From Octopus sinensis (taxonomy: Eukaryota), in assembly GCF_006345805.1 (NCBI RefSeq), contig NW_021835044.1, positions 1 through 42,613 on the forward strand: a stretch of 42,613 nt of DNA, written 5' to 3'. The notes beneath the pieces are model-generated. The model was not told the DNA's origin. It did not search any database and was given only the letters and a program-made list of their open reading frames with translations. Below are positions 12,101-27,100 of this stretch, one piece after another (position 1 is the first letter of the stretch; every line of letters begins with the position of its first letter). A program made the translations under genes and the position numbers.

Positions 12101-15100
12101 TGTCAGCAGTGGTGGTCAGTTGGACTGTCACCACCACTACTGTCATCATTATTATCACCAACATAATTATTCTTCACAGACCCAAGACCTGCCATTTAAA
12201 GGCTGCTGCAGTGAAGTTGATTAAATCTACCCCCAGAATTTTACTGGTATTTTGATGATATAAATATTGAATACTAGAGAGAGGATATAATATGTATTTG
12301 TTAACTAACCTGGGCCAGCATCAACGATACCACACCATAGCGTTGCCTGAAAGTTATACAAAGAGGAGAGGAAAAACAATTATTATTATTAGATTAACCA
12401 ATGAAAACAAATGTAATTAGGTCATTATAATCAATAATTACATACACACAAATACACATTATACATGTATATACATATATATATATATATATATATATAT
12501 ATATATATATATATATATATATATATATATATATATATATATATATATATATATATATATATATATATATATATATATATATATATATATATATATATAT
12601 GAGTTAAGGAATGGAGTAGATAAAATCTGGGCTACATGTTTCAAAGCAGGTGGAACATCAGAACTGGTAAATATCCAAACGAGGTGTATACCACAGGCTA
12701 CTCTTCAGACCAAGGGTATCTTGATTAAATGAAGTTTACACTGTCAATAGGAGAGGCACATGTTCAAACACAGAAGATGCGGTAAGGGAAAAACCAACAA
12801 CCTTGAGCCCCAATAAACTCGTTTTGTTCCTGGAAGTTGTTTTTTTTAATTTTCTATGGATTGCTTGAAGCTCACCTTCTTACCCCTCAATCCTTGGATC
12901 CTACATTTATATATATGAGGTGGAGACCCAAAAGAACCCGGAATTTTGCAATATTATTTTATTTGCTTAGTTTTACATATTAACATTTTTATCACCTTCA
13001 AAGTATTCTCCAGTTGAAGCAATGCATTAATCCAGACGCGTTTTCCTCTATTCAAAGCAGTGCTGGAACACTGGCAAAGTGATGCCTCTCGAAGCCTCCA
13101 TCGTATTTTTCTTCACCTCTTCCACGTCCGCAAATTCTGTAGCACCAGCTTTTGTCACTATGGATGACCTTCGATCAAAGTTAGGGCTTGACTTCCAGCT
13201 GTTCTTTCAGTTCACAAAATGCATTCAATCATGACTGCTTTTGATCTTCTGTGAGCAAGTGAAGCATAAATTTTGCTGCAACACTTTTCATTTGCAATTC
13301 CTCACTCAAGATTCGTTGACAAGAGCTCCAGGACTCACCAGTCATATCAACAAGTTCGGTCAATTGTTCGGTGAATGCCTTCCAAAATCAGTTCATGAAT
13401 TTTCATGATGTTTTGATTCGTTCGGGAGCTCGATGGCTGCCCTGAATGAGGTTTGGTCCTTAAGCAACAAGTGACCATTCGAAAAGCATGAAATCCACTC
13501 GTGATCTTGTGTTTTACTCATGGCATCATGGCAGTGTCCTTGTAAACTGTTTGAAGCATGACAACTGTTTCGGCTGCTATTTTCTCCAGCAGAAAACAGA
13601 ATTTGATGGAAGCAAGCTGTTCCTTCATTTCAGCCATTGCAAAACTTGATGAACAGGGGAGAAGCCCTGTAAAACAAAGATTCACCAGAAGGTAATAGGA
13701 CCACACTCAAAGATGCCGGTTGGCAGACTGATGCCTGAGTATCGCATCAAGTGGCTTCTAGTAACAGAAGCCTGAACTTCAATGGCCTTGCCCCACACAG
13801 AAACGTTTCCGGTTACTTTTGGGTACCCCCTCATATATTCGATATGCTCTCTACATTATAGACCAACGATATATATACACACCTGAGTAAACACGGCAGT
13901 CTATATATGGTATGATGAACACCTGTTATATAGACATGAGATTTAGGATGGGGAGAAGCGATAATGTGGATTATAAGGACCCCAGTACATGACTGGTATT
14001 GTATTTTATCAGCCTAGCAAAGATGGAAGGACAAGGTGACCTCGGCAGGATTTGAACTCTGAACATAAAGGGTGGTAAATAAACACCACAAGGTATTCCA
14101 TCCAACAGTAATCAGACACAAGAACAGGAGAAAAGAGGGAGGACAATTTATTAAATGAACCCCTGGATATTACTGGTACAGATTTTGACAGCAGGATTTG
14201 AACTTGGAACACAAACAGATCAAAGTAAGGGGATGATTCTGTATTTAGCCCAGGGCCAGGGGAAAGAGGAAAATTACAAGGTGGGGGGGAGGTGTTTTAC
14301 ATGTAATGAGAGGAAGAAAGGAGATGATTTGAACCTGTAACGTTGAGGTAACGAAGGATGAGAGGAAGTAAAGAATCTAGTCAGGTAACAACAACAACAA
14401 CAATAATTATGATGATTAATTAATGAAGTTAGATTACAGTGTCATTAGAGTGTGTGTGTGTGAGAGAGAGAGAGAGAGGTGAAGCATGACGGCCCATGGT
14501 GGGATTATGATATGAATGACTCGAAACAAGAAAAAAAACATTAAAGAAACAGATTTGGATAATCCAAATCCATTGGGAAATTACTTTTGAGCTGCCAGAT
14601 GGAGAGGAGTGTCACCATCTTTGGCCACCTTATTGGTATCGATGCCATTGTGTTGCAGGAGAAGTTTTACATTGTCCGTACGTCCATGAAAAGAGGCAAT
14701 ATGTAGAGGGGTGTCATCATCTTTGGTCACAGCATTGACATCAGTGCCCTTTTGTTGCAGAAGAAGGTCAACAGTGTGTATGTGTTTATGAAAAGAGGCA
14801 ATATGTAGAGCTGTCCAACCATCTTCATCCACAGCACAGACGTCAGTGCCATTGTGTTGCAGAAGAAGTTTTACAATTTGTGTGTGTCCAACTGCACAGG
14901 CAACAAGTAGAGGTGTCGAACCGATATTATTTCGCTGATTAACCTAAAAAAGATAAACAATAAAGACATTAAAGATGGTGTGTATTGGGGGAAGAAGGAA
15001 AAAAATGAAAAATGTCAGAAAAAAAGAATCAGATTAATTTAAACAGGTGGAATGAAGGTGGGGGAAAATAAATGAGATTTATAATGCATCTATACACACA

Positions 15101-24100: not shown

Positions 24101-27100
24101 TATTTTGTTGTAGAAGAAGTTTAATAATGTCTGTGTACCTGCTCTGACAGGCAAGATGTAGAGGTGTACAACCATTTACCTCCACAGCATTGACATCCGT
24201 GCCATTGTGTTGCAGAAGAAGTTTTACAATTTGTGTGTGTCCAACTGCACAGGCAAGATGTAGAGGTGTCGAACCATCACTACTTCGCTGATTAACCTAA
24301 AAAAGATAAACAATAAAGACACTAAAGATGGTGTGTATTGGGGGAAGAAGGAAAAAAATGAAAAATGTCAGAAAAAAAGAATCAGATTAATTTAAACAGG
24401 TGGAATGAAGGTGGGGGAAAATAAATGAGATTTATAATGCATCTATACACACACATATGTGTATGTATAAAAATATATATATATATATATATATACACTC
24501 TCACACATACATATATACATAAATACCTATATATACATACGTGTTTTATATCTTCACTGATCATTTGTTAATGCATTTTTGTGTATATATGCGTTTATGT
24601 GTCTGTATATTTGTGTATGTATGTACAGGTCTGCGTGAGCTGAAGAAAATTTTTAAATTAAAAAATATAAACTGTTTCAAGAAACTGGCGAACAAATAAT
24701 TTCAGTTTTGTGAGACCAACTCCGAAAGATTACCCGTTGTTTTTTTCAATGAAATTTAACAGAAATCCACCCTTTTCAATGTTGTAGCAAAGAATTATGT
24801 GTGGATTGTGGGAAAGAAAGTGGAAAAGTGTGTGTTGAAGGTGGAAGGGTATTGATCTTCAACTCATCAAAGATATTTCATTACCATAATCATTATCTAC
24901 ACACAAGGAAATGAGCAACTTTTATTTAAAAGATATAAATCGTCAGTTATGAGGAAACAAAATTTGGGGCACTAAACTGTATGTATATATCATATACATA
25001 TAACACACACATACATATATATACATATGTATATACACAAATATAAATGAATTCGCTAACCTGTAAAATGTTATTTCCTTTGGTATTTAACAGGACTTTG
25101 ACTACATCTTCATAGTTCTTCTCAACAGCCCAATGTAGAGGTGTGCTACCCTGTGAATCCTGCTTATTAACATTTGCTCCCCTGGAAACTAAGAAGGCCA
25201 CCGCATCAATTTGATGGCTGAAAGGAAGAAAAAAACATAAAACATCACAGACATTCAATTAACAATTACATTAAATATACACTCGTGTTCAATTAAATGC
25301 ATAAAAACCTATGTATACTACAGCCTCGTGTGTGTGTGTGTATGTGTGTGTGTTTGTGTGTGCGTGTGTGTATATATATATATATATATATATACATATA
25401 TATATGTGTGAGTGTGTGTGTGTGTGTGGGCATATATGTAGAGGCAAACCTATAGAAATGTGCTCCAGATGAATGCTTCCTTGTAACTTCTAGAAAAGTG
25501 GATGTTTTTCAATGAAATTTCTTTTACAAATATCCTTCAGATGGCAAAGATTCCAATTATGTAGGAATTTGTTGTGAGAAAAAAACTTTCAGTGGGTGGA
25601 GAGAGAAATTTAGGAAAGTTGACCCGAGTCGGTTTTCTTTCCAAAAAAATAGATATTTTCAAATGAAATTTTCAATATAACCGTTTCAGATGGTGAAGAT
25701 TGCAATTATATTGGAATTTAATATGAAGAAAATTTTAAAACTTGGTGGATTCGCAGAGATATATTCTGATACACATCACAAAATGAAAGTTGAACTTTGG
25801 GAAAATAACCGTGATGTGTGTCAGTATATATGTGTGCGAAACCATCAAATTTTTAGTTTTTTCATGTTAAATTCCGATATAATCCTAATCTACACCATTT
25901 GAAAGGGATTTGTAGAAATTTTCACAGAAACAAAATATCCACTTTTCTGAAAGTTATAGAAAAACAAAACGGATTTTGGGTGAAATTTGAGAAAGTCAAC
26001 TCCTCAACGTTTGAAAATTTGTTTTTACAACAAATTCCGATATAATAGGAATTTTCATCATCTGAAGCATTTTTGTCAAAGAAATTTCATTAAAAAATAT
26101 CCATTTGTCTAAAAGTTATAAGGAAACAAATTCGTCATGGGGCCCACTTGTGTAGGTATGCCTATACATAAGCATACATACATACATATATCTTTATATA
26201 TATAAAACTGAGAATGTGTGTCTGTCTGCCTGTCTGTCTGTCTGTCTGTGTGTTTCCCTAAAACTTGAGAACTACACAACCAATTTAATTCAAATTTCTC
26301 ACATGCCTTACTTAGGGTCTGGGAAGTGTCATCAGCAAAAAAAATTTTAACTTTTTGCCTAGGGCGAGCCCACAGCAATATCATATATTCTCCACTCTGA
26401 TTCCCTAAAACTTGAGAACTACAGAACCAATTTCATTCAAATTTTACACATGCCTTACTTAGGGTCCATGTAGTATCATGGGCAAAAAAAGAATGTTTAA
26501 CTTCTTGCCTAGAGCGAGCCCACAGCAGTATCATATCTTCTCCACTATTTCAGTATTACGTGTTAAAAGTGAAACAAAAACATCTCTCTATTGTATGTAT
26601 ATGGATGTATATATATATTACAAAATATAAAGTTATATCTTGAGATCGTTAGTGACAACAACGCTCAAAATATATAACAGACTGGAACAGTAGTGCTCAA
26701 ATGAGCTGTATGCACTTTTTAATCCGAGGGGAGGCAATGCAAGCAGCAACTACAAGAGCACTACAAAATCCACAGAAAGATCAAACACATACATATATTC
26801 ATATATTCATTTATATCTACAGAACAGACATAAAACCCGACGTTTAGAAATATATAGTAATATATAAATATATAAACATCATATAAAAATATATTATACG
26901 CATAAGATCCACTTGACATTCCATAAGAAATTTAGAAATAAAAATTGCAATAAAAGTTAGAGGTAATAATAACAATTGAATTGAATATAATAAATATAGT
27001 AAGTAGTAATTAAATATATTTTATTTTATTAAAATGGTAATTAAATCGTAATATAACAATTAAAACAAAAAATAGCAATTTGTATAAAATGTATCAAGGA

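Follow-up and report, generated by a model that had tools for sequence, protein, structure and literature searches.

How can two copies of one exon within a single gene differ sharply when the exon next to them is identical and the surrounding introns are almost so? The window, meaning the whole 42,613-nt stretch of Octopus sinensis DNA analysed here (contig NW_021835044.1), raises this question with Y and Y′, ankyrin-array exons of variable length that belong to the two copies of a two-exon cassette duplicated within one gene. The boundaries and lengths that an initial annotation gave to both exons hold on the minus strand (Table 1). The difference between them is probably mainly recombinational (we put this at roughly 60%), arising by gain or loss of repeat units and by patchy conversion from other units or from paralogues.

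Exon Y comprises 3.5 ankyrin units of 102 nt (A1–A4) and exon Y′ 4.5 units (B1–B5); both begin in phase 0 and end with 2 extra nucleotides, as does the short exon E1. Exon X completes the preceding half-repeat with its second helix and adds one full repeat, and the mini-exon downstream of Y takes up the two overhanging nucleotides left by any Y-type exon. The cassette is phase-symmetric (516 nt for X–Y, 618 nt for X′–Y′). One ankyrin repeat is completed at every junction, E1 to X, Y′ to X and Y to the mini-exon, so that XY, X′Y′ or both can be spliced in with the solenoid unbroken; judging from the phases, the cassettes could be used exclusively, used jointly or skipped. The reading frames of Y and Y′ and all splice sites are intact. 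The first coding exon, whose 3′ boundary (31924) and donor were taken from the translated open reading frame and paralogue proteins rather than from the DNA, runs from 32007 directly into ankyrin repeats. At the other end, the gene continues 3′ into the 166-nt tandem array, in which each 51-nt mini-exon encodes 17 amino acids, and the Death-domain exons known from paralogues would fall outside the window, past this array.

Table 1. Coordinates of the exons, duplicated segments and insertion in the window.
Feature	Position	Strand	Details
First coding exon (28 residues)	31924-32007	-	
Exon E1	30341-30492	-	short Y-type ankyrin exon, 152 nt, precedes X′
Exon X′	25217-25061	-	157 nt, nucleotide-identical to X
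Exon Y′	24296-23836	-	461 nt, consensus donor GTAAGT
Exon X	15891-15735	-	157 nt = 1 nt + 52 codons
Exon Y	14943-14585	-	359 nt, acceptor AG 14945-14944, donor GTAATT
Mini-exon (12 residues)	12310-12346	-	37 nt
Ankyrin exon (...ILDE)	9570-9782	-	Pfam match
7.8-kb exon	7622-7800	-	90% identity to O. sinensis protein P0128
RING-finger exon	2733-2872	-	Pfam zf-C3HC4_3
166-nt tandem array	1-1488	-	unit = 51-nt symmetric mini-exon + 115-nt intron
Duplicate copy 1, lower part	13625-16111	-	intron, Y, intron, X
Duplicate copy 1, upper part	18024-18811	-	intron upstream of X, self-inverted element
Duplicate copy 2	22890-26204	-	X′Y′ and introns
Inverted copy (94%) of 29050-29148	22800-22896	.	abuts lower end of copy 2
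~8.1-kb insertion relative to collinear O. vulgaris locus L004	21307-29399	-	contains copy 2

The identity of X and X′ extends beyond the exons to a perfect block of 418 nt (15514-15931 and 24840-25257). The flanking introns are nearly alike, with 6 mismatches in ~970 nt (14946-15943) and, downstream of Y, 20 in ~890 aligned nt (13650-14547), that is 0.6–2.2% divergence, or 1.4% pooled; the segment 18024-18811 differs by ~4%. As the initial annotation had noticed, Y and Y′ differ far more. The lower part of copy 1 corresponds in position to the one cassette of related loci and is separated from the upper part by a 1.9-kb insertion (16112-18023) that copy 2 lacks. Copy 2 itself lies within the ~8.1-kb insertion, which maps to a single position, 33421, of the Octopus vulgaris locus L004, the junction being flanked on either side by TAG. 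Collinearity with L004 extends over the whole window; L004 has one cassette only and is likely the orthologue of the window gene, and the related loci L002 and L003 (gene 1) likewise carry one cassette and no second. The insertion is lineage-specific, being missing from related loci of O. vulgaris and O. sinensis, and none of the fetched family proteins contains two X motifs. Between the window and L004, identity is 91–97% in introns and 93–95% in exon 1, the 7.8-kb exon and the RING exon, and falls to 69% in E1, 87% in X and 72% in Y′ (dS 0.46, dN 0.32). Between species too, then, the ankyrin exons are far more diverged than the introns, synonymous sites included.

The gap in length between Y and Y′ is exactly 102 nt, yet no single clean indel explains it: outside those 102 nt, the best alignments still show differences at 17–20% of 359 nt. 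Behind ‘exactly one repeat’ lie two chimeric units and one or more additional ones. Identical runs of 58, 49 and 35 nt are interspersed with tracts diverged by ~30% at synonymous and non-synonymous sites alike, and the differences are clustered (P ≤ 0.0004). Repeat-level shuffling, suggested at the outset, is borne out by exact matches out of register: 49 nt of the A3 tail recur as the B4 tail, offset by one unit, and 31 nt at the A2/A3 junction recur at the B4/B5 junction, offset by two. At its start, B5 departs from A4 by a six-nucleotide difference identical to the A3 head. B4 thus joins a new head to the A3 tail, and B5 the A3 head to the A4 tail. The alternation of tracts as young as the introns with tracts ~30% diverged, together with the extra and chimeric units, points to recombination among 102-nt units. 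The head of unit 1 is a separate case: five residues are changed through seven nucleotide differences in the hairpin/first-helix region, almost all non-synonymous and with no purely synonymous change, a pattern that would fit selection on point mutations too.

Synonymous divergence between matched units is 0.09–0.14, about ten times the intron level. pS is 0.126 for A1/B1, A3/B4 and A4/B5 together (Fisher P = 9e-6) and 0.090 when the edge units alone are counted (P = 3e-3), each compared with an intron value of 0.014; over all comparisons P ranges from 3e-3 to 3e-8, on small synonymous counts (8 differences in 63.5 sites). The pair A2/B2 differs at 21 of 34 residues with a pS of 0.19. Aligning the repeats properly does not bring the exon differences down to the intron background, and on that ground the original finding stands. 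dN/dS between matched units is 0.99–1.27, about 1. Since divergence in the ankyrin exons is raised to the same degree at synonymous and at replacement sites, with dN/dS no higher than about 1, non-orthologous exchange is indicated rather than accelerated substitution.

The mosaic, the unit shifts and the synonymous excess are direct observations on the two exons. In the recombinational reading, unequal exchange within the array would have changed the number of units, and short-tract gene conversion would have brought in sequence from other units or from paralogous Y exons; point substitutions accumulated since the duplication would not be the main source of the difference. Paralogues are the presumptive donors of the diverged tracts. 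A search of 108 family units from three Octopus species gave no donor sequence, the nearest sharing 20–24 of 34 residues with window units, and the longest nucleotide matches at other loci are 17–28 nt, in conserved framework codons. Unit heads of Y and Y′ are 82–87% identical to each other, which puts them as far apart as either stands from paralogues in other species (82–89%).

The initial annotation had read the same differences as rapid adaptive substitution on a recognition surface. Point substitution under positive selection on the concave surface after a recent duplication, combined with a simple repeat indel, would account for exon divergence far above that of the introns and for the head of unit 1, but selection on replacements does not produce a tenfold excess of synonymous divergence. 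With dN/dS about 1, the extent of change in A2/B2 and blocks that exactly match other units, we consider this account of Y and Y′ improbable, and the adaptive claim is not supported for this pair. In its favour, replacements are weakly enriched at surface positions: of the 37 amino-acid differences, 12 fall on the 26 positions equivalent to those varied in DARPins (46%) and 25 on the 93 others (27%; Fisher P = 0.05). This enrichment is marginal and close to the even spread over framework and surface that would contradict a surface-driven pattern. The 25 replacements off the surface set include conserved framework residues (H13L in A1, G8D in A3, G19K/R/E in A2, B2 and B3; G19 is substituted in 22 of the 108 family units), and the proposed contrast between a constant framework and a varying surface holds only in part. 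Nor is variation between Y and Y′ confined to DARPin positions 2, 3, 5, 13, 14, 33 and 26.

The likeness to DARPin libraries holds better in the family at large. Family-wide variability, which also speaks for selection on the surface, is highest at unit positions 17, 7, 18, 9, 3 and 6; by our own mapping onto the published design, we take positions 6, 7, 9, 17 and 18 to be DARPin positions 2, 3, 5, 13 and 14, which are randomised in the libraries. In the paralogue L002, whose nine units are 91% identical, pN/pS is 2.56 at DARPin-type codons and 0.76 elsewhere (permutation P = 0.005), and there the array has the DARPin-like feature. Selection for new binding surfaces is thus plausible in the family, on the pattern in L002 and not on that of Y and Y′.

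A reverse history, in which the cassettes are old and the flanks young, gives the same picture as import when seen in one genome. X′Y′ would come from a diverged source, either a paralogue or a duplicate of long standing; conversion between the copies would later have homogenised X and the introns, and the interior of Y would have escaped, its divergence preventing heteroduplexes from forming or selection maintaining two different arrays. Divergence between the copies is uneven, 0% over the 418 nt at X, 0.6% over ~1 kb, 2.2% downstream of Y and ~4% upstream, which argues for conversion between them. Moreover, Y′ shares its 4.5-unit layout and the junction ‘NCT(A/D) | V.AVTNHG.TPLH.AS.HGR’ with the O. 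vulgaris exon, and the layout of Y, with 3.5 units, is also that of L003 gene 1. Against this, the three related loci without the insertion make the second cassette look younger than the ~5% species divergence, whereas the diverged tracts look older, and the identical tracts of 58, 49 and 35 nt in Y need additional conversion events. We regard this history as possible but unlikely; it is in effect a variant of the recombinational reading, as both require non-allelic recombination with diverged family members.

Two further explanations fare worse. Intron divergence of 0.6–2.2% is of a size that alleles of a heterozygous invertebrate may show, repeat arrays are difficult to assemble, and the O. 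sinensis contig L001 terminates exactly in the intron upstream of X, all of which would suit an assembly artefact in which Y and Y′ are alleles of an exon polymorphic in repeat number, with the two haplotypes assembled into a single contig. Had a haplotype simply been duplicated, however, the flanks would recur in the same order, and here they differ on both sides of the two copies: copy 2 is part of an 8.1-kb block inserted at one point of the orthologous intron, an inverted 97-nt segment lies at one edge of copy 2, copy 1 has the 1.9-kb insertion, and the window contains no Ns. An artefact is accordingly very improbable. Neutral decay of a redundant or skipped cassette under relaxed constraint, which dN/dS about 1 and the altered framework residues might suggest, is hardly credible, as such decay cannot outpace the introns and the exon is ~10 times more diverged; frames and splice sites are preserved, Pfam Ank still matches each of the units, and the G19 substitutions recur across the family.

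The host gene of Y and Y′ is one member of an Octopus-specific family that NCBI names ‘MIB2-like’. Pfam Ank/Ank_2 match X, Y, Y′, E1 and the ankyrin exon at 9570-9782 above the curated cut-off, with Y′ scoring 145.9 bits in four stretches and Y 108.6 bits in three. The assignment of these exons to a gene of ubiquitin-ligase type is upheld by the RING exon (PF13920, 35.9 bits, cut-off 27). At the sequence level, Y′ has very strong matches to solved ankyrin structures, among them ankyrin-1, a fungal ‘Pfs, NACHT and Ankyrin domain protein’ (6ne1) and DARPins, which rank with the best; an AlphaFold2 model of Y′ predicted from its sequence alone is poor (mean pLDDT 55), with units 1–2 helical at unit positions 11–18 and 21–30, as expected. 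Family members combine 2.5 to 10.5 ankyrin units with a RING finger and 17-residue modules, and in paralogues with a C-terminal Death domain; the search gave no close relatives of the non-ankyrin half outside Octopus. From domain content, the ankyrin array would be the target-binding part of a RING E3 or Death-domain adaptor, and it could recognise pathogens or substrates. A broader proposal, which we consider improbable, is that the ANK–RING–Death family is a germline, recombination-diversified repertoire for intracellular recognition, with phase-symmetric cassettes exchanged among paralogues and X′Y′ and XY as alternative or additive modules. If so, it would parallel, in an animal, the highly internally conserved (HIC) repeat receptors of fungi or the TRIM-type restriction factors, and X′Y′ and XY would each link a different binding surface to the same RING/Death effector.

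To our knowledge, no allorecognition or immune role has been described for the octopus family. The HIC arrays of fungal NLRs (WD40, ANK, TPR; for example Podospora hnwd / het-e, het-d, het-r) are recognition domains of tandem repeat units that are gained, lost and shuffled within and between paralogues and vary at a few hypervariable positions of the binding face (PMC2873952; PMC13449251). The octopus units are likewise gained, lost and shuffled, with the range of unit numbers among paralogues given above; the array of L002 concentrates non-synonymous variation at binding-face codons, and a fungal NACHT–ankyrin protein is among the PDB matches of Y′. The octopus family, however, is animal, has no NACHT or NB-ARC NTPase in the window exons or in family members, uses a RING finger and a Death domain as effector and splits its arrays into phase-symmetric exons, and the units within Y and Y′ are 65–75% identical at the nucleotide level, compared with the 80–100% expected of HIC repeats.

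The octopus units share the consensus of DARPins (TPLH, GH turn, LLL helix) and probably their fold, and the family varies most at unit positions that include five of those randomised in DARPins; the octopus unit, however, has 34 residues against 33, and in Y and Y′ the framework is not constant, the likeness to a library being that of L002. Like MIB1/MIB2, the gene places a C-terminal RING of the zf-C3HC4_3 type after its ankyrin repeats, and the 7.8-kb exon presumably resembles the last ankyrin region preceding the RINGs in MIB proteins. Unlike them, the family has 17-residue CPKxEEK modules and, in paralogues, a Death domain; MIB/HERC2 and ZZ domains are absent from the precomputed Pfam lists of ~90 Octopus family members and from the 5′ exons in the window, which show no N-terminal MIB/HERC2–ZZ–MIB/HERC2 and REP arrangement.

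As in tandem exon-cassette duplications of other repeat proteins, several repeats were copied at once along exon boundaries, with phase symmetry keeping the frame; here, though, one exon is sharply different while its neighbour is identical and the introns are 98–100% alike. Exons also diverge faster than introns in snake-venom PLA2 and conotoxin genes and in MHC peptide-binding exons, as the octopus ankyrin exons do between species (69–87% against 91–97%), but in octopus synonymous sites are equally inflated and dN/dS is at or below 1.

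The two-exon ankyrin cassette of the minus-strand gene is present twice, as X–Y (copy 1) and X′–Y′ (copy 2), within duplicated DNA that spans 13625–16111 and 18024–18811 in copy 1 and 22890–26204 in copy 2. The initial annotation had described Y and Y′ as differing by one 102-nt repeat and by many replacements beside identical exons X and X′. Both observations are confirmed, and the identity of X and X′ lies within a 418-nt perfect block. Mismatching intron columns between the copies amount to 2.2% downstream of Y and 0.6% from Y to the upstream end of X, and the upstream segment of the duplication reaches about 4%. 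Y is formed by 3.5 units of 102 nt (A1–A4) and Y′ by 4.5 (B1–B5). Units within Y and within Y′ are 65–75% identical in nucleotides. Of the unit pairs, A1/B1 stands at 91%, A3/B4 at 84% and A4/B5 at 87%, and the remaining pairs at 45–79%.

Synonymous sites in Y and Y′ differ at a proportion of 0.09–0.14 against an intron mismatch of 0.014, an excess of about tenfold (Fisher P = 3e-3 to 3e-8). Selection for replacements cannot lift synonymous divergence, and neutral decay cannot outrun the intron rate, so that neither point-mutation selection nor neutral decay explains the Y/Y′ difference. By the Nei–Gojobori method, the best-matched units (A1/B1, A3/B4 and A4/B5) give a dS of 0.138 and a dN of 0.137, and adding A2/B2 gives 0.158 and 0.201, respectively.

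The divergence is instead a mosaic. Whichever of B2, B3 or B4 is dropped, 17–20% of 359 sites differ, but the differences are clustered (permutation P ≤ 0.0004) and leave runs of 58, 49 and 35 nt without any mismatch. Identity also occurs out of register, with A3 41–89 equal to B4 41–89 after a shift of one unit, and A2 94–102 plus A3 1–22 equal to B4 94–102 plus B5 1–22 after a shift of two; these displaced runs bear out the earlier proposal of repeat-level shuffling. At the beginning of B5, 6 of 13 nt depart from A4, and all six match the head of A3, which makes this a single templated event in place of six substitutions. Between Y and Y′, the tails of units 1 and 3/4 have an identity of 93–96%. 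The unit heads are 82–87% identical between Y and Y′ and 82–89% identical to paralogues of other species, and are hence no closer to each other than to those paralogues.

We infer that the Y/Y′ differences arose by unequal exchange between 102-nt units together with short-tract conversion from paralogous units. Alternatively, an already diverged Y′ may have been brought in and its flanks then homogenised. A search of four related loci for donor tracts returned short framework matches only, and the 108 family units likewise contained no donor. Exchange with conversion and import with homogenisation both require non-allelic recombination, and the Y/Y′ pair is a good example of repeat-array remodelling by recombination within a young, lineage-specific gene family. 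The initial interpretation of a rapidly evolving recognition surface thus stands in part: remodelling is supported, and adaptive surface evolution is not demonstrated by this pair.

The second cassette is lineage-specific. The collinear O. vulgaris locus (L004) holds a single X–Y cassette, and relative to it the window carries about 8.1 kb of extra DNA (21307–29399), with X′Y′ inside, at a single point of the E1–X intron (L004 33421) with TAG on both sides; E1 is a short Y-type ankyrin exon. The O. sinensis paralogue locus L002 and gene 1 of the related locus L003 have one cassette each, without the 8.1-kb block, and a second X motif occurs in 0 of 17 fetched proteins that bear an X motif. X–Y is therefore the positional counterpart, and X′Y′ the addition. 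Adjoining the lower edge of copy 2 is a 97-nt inverted copy (22800–22896) of 29050–29148, which, with the single-point insertion, suggests a complex rearrangement over a plain tandem duplication. Copy 1 contains a 1.9-kb insertion (16112–18023), (TA)n-rich and partly palindromic, that is absent from copy 2. A simple haplotype mis-assembly could also place two versions of one exon side by side, but the flanks of the two copies differ in the inverted segment and the 1.9-kb insertion, which argues against it.

Several repeats lie in and around the duplicated DNA. Elements of about 750 nt match their own reverse complement at 70–87%; one lies at the upstream end of each copy (18055–18790 and 25399–26204), and others are at 19071–19868 and 20084–20449. 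A dispersed repeat, some 180 nt long and also found in related Octopus loci, occurs in seven copies that are 70–92% identical, one of them on the lower border of the 8.1-kb insertion. Retroelement-like ORF fragments lie at 38811–39176 (minus strand) and nearby within 36–40 kb, as well as at 10.4–11.3 kb, and one of these fragments scores 27.2 bits for RVT_1, just under the cut-off of 29.6. A mariner-like origin of the ORF fragments at 12957–13629, next to the lower duplication boundary, was dropped because Pfam gave no match.

Features of the window and their nucleotide identity to the collinear O. vulgaris locus (L004)
Feature	Positions	Strand	Basis or remark	Identity to L004
Exon 1 (first coding)	32007–31924	minus	3′ boundary inferred from ORF translation and paralogues	
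E1, short Y-type ankyrin exon	30492–30341	minus	Pfam ankyrin	69%, pS 0.47
X′	25217–25061	minus	identical to X	
Y′	24296–23836	minus	Pfam ankyrin	72%
X	15891–15735	minus	Pfam ankyrin	87%, pS 0.22
Y	14943–14585	minus	Pfam ankyrin	
Mini-exon, 37 nt	12346–12310	minus		
Ankyrin exon (9.7-kb exon)	9782–9570	minus	Pfam ankyrin	
7.8-kb exon	7800–7622	minus		
RING exon (2.8-kb exon)	2872–2733	minus	Pfam RING	
17-aa mini-exon array	1488–1	minus	runs beyond window	
Exon 1, 7.8-kb exon and RING exon				93–95%
Introns around cassette				91–97%
Dispersed repeat, about 180 nt	9375–9525, 16865–17047, 21300–21490, 28484–28665, 29553–29740, 33760–33963, 37580–37805			

The DNA of the window is eukaryotic and AT-rich, contains microsatellites and dispersed repeats, and has 0 Ns. 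Its 3′ half is matched at about 95% by an O. sinensis contig (L001), and over its whole length it runs collinear with 29.03–29.09 Mb of O. vulgaris chromosome OX597842.1 (L004), with a non-coding identity of 91–96%. Such similarity would fit a source closely related to these species or, alternatively, a very close paralogous locus. The X′+Y′ protein as a query gave mostly generic ankyrin proteins, and a composite query of non-repeat exons was used instead. Exon-based protein searches matched many proteins of O. sinensis, O. vulgaris and O. bimaculoides at 48–68% identity, none of them near-identical, under NCBI names such as ‘E3 ubiquitin-protein ligase MIB2-like’ and ‘ankyrin-3-like’. Precomputed Pfam annotation of the matched proteins gives ankyrin repeats and a zf-C3HC4_3 RING, often with a Death domain.

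The cassettes are phase-symmetric. E1, Y′ and Y open in phase 0 with ‘VNQ’ and close with a two-base overhang (AA); X and the 37-nt mini-exon take up a single base at their start and finish in phase 0. At every exon junction the first helix of a half-repeat meets a second helix, and the cassettes, 516 nt for X–Y and 618 nt for X′–Y′, are both divisible by three. Since the junctions complete repeats, the phases predict that either, both or neither of the cassettes can be spliced in frame as a continuous ankyrin solenoid. The internal units of Y and Y′ start with a Val codon, GTN, preceded by GAT, GAC or GCT (for example, at boundaries 14841/14842 and 24194/24195), so that a GT in phase 0 lies at every unit boundary and could serve as a candidate cryptic donor. 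Two annotated paralogue isoforms, P0055 and P0125, seem to leave the array from inside. The O. vulgaris isoform P0055 matches the mini-exon (12308–12346) at 13 of 13 residues in a reading frame unlike that of other family proteins; its model apparently exits a Y-type exon early, crosses the mini-exon out of frame and then enters the Death domain. The mini-exon array at 1–1488 is a 166-nt satellite of nine copies (92% matches) that runs off the window start, each unit consisting of a 51-nt phase-symmetric mini-exon encoding 17 aa, flanked by cag and gtgagt, and a 115-nt intron. Paralogue proteins have 2–4 of these 17-aa modules, located between RING and Death domain, and at the homologous place L001, L002 and L003 match over about 470–650 nt, or 3–4 units.

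Exon-centred turnover also extends between species. The ankyrin exons E1, X and Y′ are less similar to L004 than the introns around them, with a dS of 0.46 and a dN of 0.32 between Y′ and the Y exon of L004, and the nearest relatives among the fetched proteins vary from exon to exon. The ankyrin exons thus have a history different from that of their own introns and are not simple orthologues; repeated swapping of ankyrin-coding tracts among paralogues, besides gain and loss of units, is the simplest reading. Unit counts in the family range from 2.5 to 10.5. Y is laid out in 3.5 units like gene 1 of L003, and Y′ shares with L004 both the length of 4.5 units and the junction of NCT with ..TNHG.TPLH.AS.HGR. 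A derivation of Y′ from an ancestral Y, based on the common 3.5-unit layout, was dropped because the collinear O. vulgaris locus has 4.5 units.

The DARPin design of Binz et al. in 2003 reportedly carries randomised positions, which we take to be positions 4, 6, 7, 9, 17, 18 and 30 of the 34-residue unit, mapped here by the TPLH register and the DARPin design; the single-exon structure model of Y′ has a pLDDT of 55, too low for surface mapping. Replacements between Y and Y′ affect 12 of 26 DARPin-type positions and 25 of 93 others (P = 0.05), or 7 of 19 DARPin-type positions when the A2/B2 pair is left out (P = 0.06), and conserved framework residues are altered as well (H13L, G8D, G19K/R/E and P11A). 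The claim that the framework is held while the surface varies is thus weakly true for Y and Y′, and true for the family. Over 108 distinct Octopus units, entropy peaks at positions 17, 7, 18, 9, 3 and 6, and G8, T10, L12, H13, A15 and L26–L28 are near-invariant. A 10.5-unit ankyrin exon at L002 (12460–13530; O. sinensis VCDQ01005398.1), of which the annotated protein P0125 uses just a part, has nine internal units that are 91% identical in nucleotides. At the seven a-priori codons of this array, pN/pS reaches 2.56, compared with 0.76 elsewhere and 0.31 in a set of 26 framework codons. The a-priori codons show an excess of non-synonymous differences (P = 0.005) but not of synonymous ones (P = 0.56), and unit codons 5–7, 9, 14 and 16–18 account for nearly all of the non-synonymous variation. 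It is this natural consensus-repeat array that shows a true ‘natural DARPin-like’ pattern, and it supports a diversified binding face at the family level.

Judging by the domains, the gene product would be a RING E3 whose targets are chosen by the ankyrin array and whose Death domain would serve homotypic signalling. The present evidence amounts to a clear but fairly ordinary case of how repeat arrays evolve in a young gene family, and it illustrates that a binding domain made of repeats can be remodelled quickly: as exons both begin and end at boundaries between repeats, and in matching phases, units or entire cassettes can be duplicated, lost or swapped while the protein stays intact. For this family, gene trees and selection tests that are blind to recombination would mislead. 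The more novel possibility, at the family level, is that modular cassettes supply a diversified repertoire for recognition; if this proved to be so, and to be coupled to ubiquitination and to signalling through the Death domain, the family would become a new candidate in the innate immunity of cephalopods.

Full-text searches on Octopus MIB2-like, ankyrin or Death-domain expansion returned no paper describing the family, and a search of limited sensitivity found close relatives of the non-ankyrin half in Octopus only. Unlike Mind bomb, the Octopus gene has no MIB/HERC2-ZZ module and is therefore not a Mind bomb orthologue. Fungal NOD-like receptors have repeat arrays that lose, gain and shuffle units both within and between paralogues and that are hypervariable at a few positions on the binding face (PMC2873952, PMC13449251). 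Without an NTPase domain, and with Y/Y′ units just 65–75% identical, the Octopus family falls outside that class, but it is these fungal arrays that it most resembles in the way it works.
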